NCBI GenBank assembly: GCA_965285935.1
Contig: OZ260664.1
Span: forward strand, 90,334,001 to 90,398,000
Length of the DNA: 64,000 nucleotides
Origin: Ophelia neglecta
Taxonomy: Eukaryota
Reading direction: 5' to 3'
The notes under the pieces were generated by a model. The model made no database searches and had not been told where the DNA came from. It saw only the letters and a list, made by a program, of their open reading frames with translations. Position numbers and translations under genes: made by a program. This document shows, one piece after another, positions 676-1,660 of the stretch (within the stretch, counting starts at the first letter, position 1; the number at the start of each line of letters is the position of its first letter).

Positions 676-719
676 TGCCCTATGCACCAAGAAGTGATAT
701 TTCTTCAAAATTGCGTGTC
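676..719 (-). promoter_or_regulatory. Putative editing-complementary sequence (ECS) pairing with the Q/R site and 5' splice site of the M2 exon
   Basis: Plus-strand tgccctatgcaccaagaagtgatatttcttcaaaattgcgtgtc is an inverted near-copy of 1296-1340. In the pre-mRNA it gives 34 Watson-Crick plus 6 G-U pairs over 45 nt (hand alignment). Function is inferred. Confidence 0.7.
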
Positions 720-1304
720 GCTAATTGGTCATTCTACTGTGACGTACGCATTTTACGGCCGCGCATGTGTACTAACTCAACTCACATCCTCAGAAGCTTG
801 ATGTCAATAGGATACATAATTTGATCCAAAAGGCCGATAATCTTTGGTCGGTGCAGACAGACATGTGCAGTTTTGGAACCAAAATAGACGTGCATAAACT
901 GCGAGGAAGTAGGATAATGTTTAAAGTTTTTTTTGTGATTTTTTTTCGCCCAGTTTTGACTGTCCATAGGCGAGGAGAGGAGGAAAGATAGTCGAACTGT
1001 GCACCAGAAACTAAGATTAATGAAGGCGCAGAGAAAGGAGATAGACAGCAAAAAAGGCCAAACTGGGTTAAATAAACCTGGCAAACCGAAGCAAACATTA
1101 ATTATATTTTGTTTAGAAAACTGAATGGCTGTTGAAAGGAAATGAAATGTGCTGAGCGGGAGCTACTCATCTACTTTATAATTCATCATGTAACGGGATA
1201 TAGGTCAAGTACTGAGCCCATGCTGGCGACCTCAAATGCGTACAACGTGCTCACGTCACACCACATAACGTCATCATGTGACGTCACAGGCATGGGACAC
1301 AAAC

Positions 1305-1660
1305 CTTGGGGAAATATCACATCCTTGCTGCATAAAAGCACCCAGAGCGAACCACAAACTATTTAAGATGGTAAAGTCGTTGGTGAAGGTTGGACCGTTG
1401 ACTGAATCCTCGATTTGCCATTCGTATGGAGAGAAGCGGCTGACTAAAAATAGCACTATGGAGACTCCCAGGTACGAAAACACGATACACATCCAAATCT
1501 CGTAGGAGAGCGGGTCCATAAACGAGAAGACGCCCGGCTTTTGTTTCTCGGGTTTTTTAATCATGATACTGATACCCAGCGACATGAACGGCTTGGAGAA
1601 GTCTATAACCCGTTCTCGTATGGAGGAGATGGTCAGCGGCGCGATGGCCAAGTCTGCTTC
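1305..1660 (-). CDS. GRIA: GRIA-like exon (S1 end, M1, M2 pore loop with genomic Q at the Q/R site, codon CAG at 1330-1328)
   Basis: Acceptor tatctcacag|GAA, donor CCA AG|gtttgt, 356 nt. Encodes [37 protein letters not shown]...[19 protein letters not shown]. Confidence 0.97.

Follow-up and report, generated by a model that had tools for sequence, protein, structure and literature searches.

The window, a stretch of 64,000 nucleotides from Ophelia neglecta, an annelid outside the clitellates, contains on its minus strand, at positions 1305 to 1660, an exon that belongs to an ionotropic glutamate receptor (iGluR) of the AMPA type and whose translation includes the last part of S1, followed by M1 and by the M2 pore loop with its two Gln codons. 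The preliminary description of this DNA had taken the gene for an AMPA receptor of invertebrate type, and the S1/M1/M2 translation is indeed that of an annelid AMPA-type iGluR; the gene calls homologous to the exon carry the Pfam domains Lig_chan and Lig_chan-Glu_bd. Its closest relatives are exon-level gene calls from assemblies, with identities of 88-96%. A protein of Paralvinella palmiformis falls within one 90% cluster of the exon's relatives, and proteins of the leech Helobdella are found among the more distant matches. The first of the two Gln codons, a CAG at positions 1328 to 1330 of the minus strand, occupies the Q/R (Q1) pore position, and its central base, A1329, is the candidate edited base. 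Hence, the locus combines the two properties looked for in a Q/R substrate, namely membership of the iGluR family and a genomic Gln codon CAG at the apex of the M2 pore. The pore-loop exon ends at the 5' splice site 1305|1304, so that A1329 lies 24 nt before it, the same position as in exon 11 of vertebrate GRIA2. The M3 exon (SYTANLAAF) is located about 3.25 kb downstream of the pore-loop exon, beyond the window, in L004.

Q/R editing of GluA2 is the textbook example of an essential recoding event, and in vertebrates the recoding blocks calcium entry. At the annelid locus, the last 36-39 nt of the exon, together with positions +1 to +9 of the intron, form the 5' arm of a duplex (1296 to 1343, minus strand, as obtained by folding) that spans the 5' splice site. 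Its partner, the putative editing-site complementary sequence (ECS; 676 to 719, minus strand), was delimited with RNAduplex and by conservation, and lies about 585 nt into the 3.25-kb intron. This pairing had been worked out by hand in the preliminary description, and RNAduplex reproduced it in full for the segments 1340-1296 and 719-676, with an energy of -45.4 kcal/mol: 40 of the 45 nt in the 5' arm have a partner, in 34 cases through Watson-Crick and in six through G-U pairing, and A1329 pairs with U686 inside the duplex. The flaws of the helix consist of a G.G opposition at the base 3' of A1329 (+1), two C.A mismatches, and single-nucleotide bulges. The C.A mismatches involve the intronic A704 and A705, which face two exonic C residues within a conserved internal loop. 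Overall, the energies computed for the window's duplex range from about -45 to -49 kcal/mol.

When a 761-nt region was folded (z -2.84), the duplex appeared in the MFE structure as well as in the centroid, and none of 20 shuffles folded as well. When the arm was allowed to pair anywhere in the real 3.25-kb intron, its best duplex reached -46.3 kcal/mol, compared with -29.0 +/- 2.4 kcal/mol in 60 dinucleotide-preserving shuffles of the intron, the best of which attained -34.3 kcal/mol; the real duplex has a z-score of -7.4. Thus, the duplex is far more stable than would be expected by chance. Another 35 45-mers taken from the same exon gave -31.2 +/- 3.8 kcal/mol with the real intron, and the best of these gave -41.0 kcal/mol. 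It had been envisaged at the outset that the segment 650-775 might turn out to be a high-copy repeat. However, in the 762-Mb genome the segment 640-790 matches itself alone (E <= 10), meaning that the ECS segment is single copy and hence not a repeat.

To analyze conservation, we retrieved the regions surrounding the homologous exon from public contigs and, at each locus, searched the intron for the segment that pairs best with the arm of the respective exon. A homologous intronic complement was found in 12 distinct loci, including the window's own gene (the others being L115, L006, L089, L007, L009, L012, L013, L091/92, L093, L094/95, and L116 of Paralvinella palmiformis). In these 12 loci the complement is located between 581 and 3007 nt downstream, and the duplex energies vary from -40 to -61 kcal/mol; the means for shuffled introns in the same scans were near -29 to -32 kcal/mol. 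In Paralvinella palmiformis (GCA_025642065.1), the base corresponding to A1329 is at about 997,729 of JAODUP010000002.1, and the ECS follows some 3.0 kb downstream. In pairwise alignment, the intron of the window's gene and that of L115 are only 25-45% identical and essentially unalignable, except at the beginning, over the first 90 nt, and in an island at 764-564. Within this island, the segment 713-664 is 100% identical between the two, which is more than the coding exon itself (84-94%).

The exon side of the duplex is constrained as well. Third codon positions are variable at three of 10 sites within the arm versus 69 of 71 elsewhere in the exon (Fisher p 1e-6), and the mean pairwise third-position difference amounts to 0.12 in the arm versus 0.54 upstream. 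The duplex formed by the sense strand is also more stable than its antisense counterpart in all 11 orthologues analyzed (mean -46.8 versus -37.0 kcal/mol), and so the strand asymmetry in G-U pairs, which initially was a mere hint obtained from the window alone, holds across species. These results bear on the view that the pairing arose by chance as an inverted repeat, or is what remains of a decaying transposon or inverted duplication. Short inverted repeats are indeed common, 19 of them being listed in the first 3 kb. Against this view, however, stand the distance from the shuffled introns, the single genomic copy, the G-U bias of the sense strand and, above all, the fact that 12 orthologues keep the ECS at varying distances within unalignable introns. 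We find this view scarcely credible, and the conservation data rule it out.

Inspection of individual positions, counted from the target A, revealed which features of the helix are kept. The target A is in an A-U pair in all 11 orthologues analyzed, the G on its 3' side (+1) is mismatched in 10 of the 11, and none of them closes the internal loop of two bases at +19/+20. The maintenance of the +1 mismatch and of the +19/+20 loop is what would be expected of a site-selective ADAR substrate, rather than of a plain stabilizing helix. Compensatory changes are found at a few positions. At the wobble position of the second Gln codon (+4), an A-to-G change in L013 and L094 is accompanied by a U-to-C change on the opposite strand, converting an A-U into a G-C pair; position +9 of the intron (+33) forms a C-G, a G-C or an A-U pair depending on the lineage; and in L093 positions -7 and -5 co-change, a Phe-to-Ile replacement being matched on the other strand. 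Alignment of the orthologous introns, which had been proposed as a check on the original observation, therefore shows an ECS conserved in 12 loci with a few compensatory changes. It should be noted that most pairs of the helix are invariant, so that the covariation evidence rests on few positions, and that the energies of cognate and non-cognate arm pairs across species did not differ significantly (p 0.32). The conservation evidence for the duplex is much stronger than the covariation evidence.

Based on these data, we conclude that the exon-intron dsRNA over the Q/R codon is real and under selection. Of the editing system originally claimed for this gene, the structural half stands: the duplex is present in 12 loci, and synonymous constraint, compensation and G-U bias indicate that it is selected. 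Among the relatives that were fetched and scanned, the other Q-encoding loci showed no excess of exon-intron complementarity. In the case of L090, a Q-encoding locus with 89% amino acid identity on the 983-kb ENA contig ctg30906l, no complement was found in the 2.3-kb intron or in 3 kb upstream. This locus has one synonymous change in the arm; the element may have been lost, or L090 may be a paralogue.

The complement does not stand alone in the intron. In the alignment it is flanked by two conserved blocks that are complementary to each other, and that form the 5' strand (748 to 775, minus strand) and the 3' strand (649 to 678, minus strand) of a hairpin, referred to here as P2. Both strands were identified with RNAalifold and by folding, and the 3' strand also by an inverted-repeat search. 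The RNAalifold consensus of 11 orthologues consists of a 17-bp stem in which four pairs have changes on both sides in at least one species, and whose loop, about 78 nt long, comprises the complement together with a variable spacer. Folded alone, the region 645-780 gives -45.7 kcal/mol (z -4.2, a value reached by none of 200 shuffles), with most of the complement left unpaired in the centroid structure. The order in the RNA is exon arm, 5' strand of P2, complement, and 3' strand of P2, and therefore the two helices together would constitute a pseudoknot, a topology that nested folding programs cannot show. The 3' strand of P2 abuts the 3' end of the ECS with a 3-nt overlap, and P2 and the exon:ECS helix compete for the last 3-6 nt only, which pair with the exon via G-U. 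Because the 3' end of the ECS continues into the 3' strand of P2, both helices could stack as one longer helix. A search of Rfam found no family matching the region 400-1298.

The other stretch of the intron that could be aligned, its first 90 nt (1214 to 1304, minus strand), contains local hairpins that adjoin the duplex, as judged by folding and inverted-repeat search, and is conserved in the closest relatives alone. According to the identity profile, this proximal region matches L115 at 82-94%; it also resembles that of the TARA contig L008, but not that of more distant orthologues.

Many of the relatives that were fetched encode Arg genomically at the Q/R position, using CGN or AGG. They can be divided into an "RQ" type, having Arg at the Q/R position, and an "RR" type, having Arg at both positions (examples are L014-L037, P0258, and P0307 of Helobdella robusta). 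Helobdella has both types, from which we deduce that the Arg-encoding genes are clitellate. None of the 12 ECS-bearing loci has a genomic Arg at the Q/R position, and most of the Arg-encoding clitellate relatives showed no excess of exon-intron complementarity when their introns were scanned. At the level of sequence, the genomic Arg of clitellates conforms to the usual pattern in which an edited A is replaced by a genomic G. An exon tree based on 116 columns is mostly without resolution on the orthology of the Arg-encoding clitellate genes to the window's gene.

One group of presumably clitellate genes for AMPA-type subunits, named LLRQG after its pore motif, combines a genomically encoded Arg at Q1 (CGN or AGG) with a CAG codon at the second position (L040/L041, L043, L055, L060, and L079-L081, all of which are metagenome contigs). 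These genes have their own conserved, GC-rich intronic complement, located 500-1550 nt downstream, which gives rise to duplexes of -44 to -54 kcal/mol that include the second Gln codon, whose A is paired or bulged, as well as the 5' splice site. This duplex may serve editing at the second pore position, or it may be a splicing helix. Since it is kept despite the genomic Arg, a duplex of this kind need not serve the Q1 site, and this is the strongest point in favor of readings other than Q1 editing. As a separate observation, the intron of L044 (JAAUYG010299582.1) contains, at about 124 nt from its start, a sequence that nearly repeats the pore-loop coding end of the exon and has CGT, an Arg codon; it may represent an exon that has been duplicated or is used in a mutually exclusive manner, or else an error of assembly.

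In all orthologues analyzed, the 5' splice site and intron positions +1 to +9 are paired within the duplex. Pairing of this kind would fit a conserved long-range RNA structure that hides the 5' splice site and thereby controls splicing, with no functionally relevant recoding at Q1, and so would the comparable duplex that is conserved in clitellate genes whose Q1 codon already specifies Arg. However, the helix extends 38 nt into the exon versus only 9-11 nt into the intron, and is thus centered on the pore codons and not on the splice site; moreover, the mismatch beside A1329 and the internal loop have no obvious role in splice-site occlusion. In addition, a nuclear dsRNA of about 40 bp is expected to be edited anyway in an animal that possesses an ADAR. 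We therefore regard control of splicing without Q1 recoding as rather unlikely. The inclusion of the 5' splice site in the duplex does imply that editing, if it takes place, would need to come before splicing.

It could also be argued that the duplex is an ADAR substrate whose main recoded base lies elsewhere than at Q1, with Q1 being edited weakly or not at all. The exon arm contains nine adenosines, and the candidates include the second Gln codon (1325-1326), Met, Asp and Ile codons in the arm, and the last Arg codon. The second Gln codon receives some support from the clitellates: the "RR" group, including Helobdella, hard-wires Arg at both Gln positions, and in the LLRQG duplex the A of this codon is paired or bulged within the helix. 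Yet only the A of Q1 has both an invariant A-U pair and a 3' mismatch, the latter in 10 of 11 orthologues, and the third base of the second Gln codon is no different from other paired bases, its A-to-G change being compensated on the opposite strand. This possibility appears distinctly improbable to us.

Editing would require an enzyme, and five A_deamin loci were found in the genome. The best of these, to which the other four are additional, is located at C1:51217194-51218444; two dsrm matches (C1:51227452-51228018) lie about 9 kb upstream of it on the same strand. Judged by its predicted domains, this combination of an A_deamin and two dsRBDs on C1 is the architecture of an ADAR.

Several features observed here belong to the classical signature of ADAR targets, which comprises synonymous constraint in the exon, a distant conserved intronic complement, imperfections that are kept, G-U pairs in the sense strand, an ADAR in the genome, and a hard-wired Arg in sister lineages. 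Taken together, the data make it probable, in our view, that the duplex serves as a substrate for ADAR in the manner of the GRIA2 Q/R site, and that A1329 is subject to Q/R editing. In the pre-mRNA, the last bases of the pore-loop exon, together with the first nine of the intron, pair with the element 0.58-3.0 kb downstream, the distance depending on the species, to give an imperfect duplex of about 40 bp. According to the proposed model, the dsRBD-containing ADAR (C1:51.217-51.228 Mb) would bind this duplex and deaminate A1329, an A that is paired with U and followed, on the 3' side, by a mismatched G. The 5' neighbor of the target A is a C, the same base as in vertebrates; this is not a context preferred by ADAR. 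The Gln codon would subsequently be read as Arg at the pore apex and, by analogy with vertebrate GluA2, the Arg form would probably have a lower Ca2+ permeability and a reduced polyamine block. The role of P2 in this model would be to keep the complement accessible; stacked end-to-end, it could also lengthen the exon:ECS helix at the end that is only 11-14 bp away from the target A. No transcript-derived polychaete proteins spanning the exon junction were found in protein searches that covered the next exon and the proteins of relatives; the same search did find one vertebrate transcript with Arg (P0359), indicating that this approach can succeed. Among public sequencing runs, those retrieved for the species were DNA-like only, apart from small-share runs of other organisms.

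The closest known counterpart is vertebrate GRIA2, where an ECS in intron 11 pairs with exon 11 and the site is edited by ADAR2. The two systems have in common the gene family, the pore codon CAG, the position at the exon end, a complement in the downstream intron, an imperfect helix, synonymous constraint in the exon, and relatives with a genomic Arg. They differ in that the present gene is from an annelid, that its ECS is 0.58-3.0 kb away and lies within the loop of an additional, conserved hairpin, which results in a pseudoknot topology, that the mismatch is directly 3' of the target, and that editing is here predicted from the sequence. The ECS was examined in annelid loci, and the likeness to GRIA2 described here is one of architecture. 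With respect to the architecture, a long-range or pseudoknotted intronic complement is reportedly also present in synaptotagmin I of Drosophila, which Reenan is said to have described in 2005, the exon being paired with a distant intronic element. In insect substrates of this kind, presentation depends on additional intronic helices, and the substrates are recognized by unusual exonic conservation. The genes and sites involved are different, and we know of no insect substrate of this kind that concerns the pore of a glutamate receptor.

In vertebrate GRIK1 and GRIK2, the intronic complement is at kb-scale distance. The Q/R sites of both genes are edited in human (PMC9989829), so that recoding occurs at the homologous pore position; these receptors are kainate-type, whereas the window's gene is AMPA-type. 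Another way of obtaining a positive charge at the pore apex is to encode it in the genome, as in an acoel AMPA subunit that has a genomic Arg at Q2 (Wang et al. 2026, PMC13520880) and in the clitellate subunits described above. The end is the same, but the Arg of acoels and clitellates is encoded by DNA and makes editing unneeded, whereas the window's gene has a Gln codon plus the duplex. To date, Q/R editing has been regarded as a vertebrate feature, as also stated in the preliminary description, and the literature agrees: a comparative study of AMPA receptors from 2026 places the origin of the editing mechanism in vertebrates (PMC13520880), and a survey of the editomes of 17 species, none of them an annelid, lists Q/R recoding in zebrafish and human only (PMC9989829 Table S5). 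Our literature searches for editing of annelid glutamate receptors found no report.

The results obtained here suggest that Q/R editing may not necessarily be a vertebrate invention. Combining all observations, we lean, though only slightly, towards the following joint view. Annelids would perform Q/R editing by means of a hairpin-presented duplex, in lineages comprising at least Paralvinella and that of the window, such that errant as well as sedentary annelids would recode, and clitellates would have hard-wired the outcome. Q/R editing would then not be a vertebrate innovation; it would be either convergent or ancestral, the latter option placing it in the bilaterian ancestor and being in line with the shared intron position. 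If editing is confirmed, Q/R editing will be known from two lineages, vertebrates and annelids, which probably arrived independently at one and the same molecular means of adjusting Ca2+ permeability. Confirmation would also mean that an edited A and a hard-wired G have been interchanged within one phylum, between polychaetes and clitellates. Finally, a complement located in a hairpin loop would constitute a new substrate architecture, relevant to the question of how ADAR is aimed at single sites.

The exon of the window is unique in its own genome, and the other AMPA-like and kainate-like exons that were found there all encode Gln; no AMPA-type exon with a genomic Arg was present among the 20 best matches. 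Neither the AMPA-like nor the kainate-like Q-encoding paralogues had a complement in the 1.5 kb that was inspected. The exon end homologous to the vertebrate R/G editing site is located at L004:7040-7200 on the minus strand (...IGSELR), and no hairpin with the adjacent intron was detected at this R/G-like position (z -1.1). Two tandem AMPA-like paralogues are situated 50-80 kb downstream on the same strand, with CAA CAG as Gln codons in the one (C7:90254840-90255412) and CAA CAA in the other (C7:90284816-90285448).
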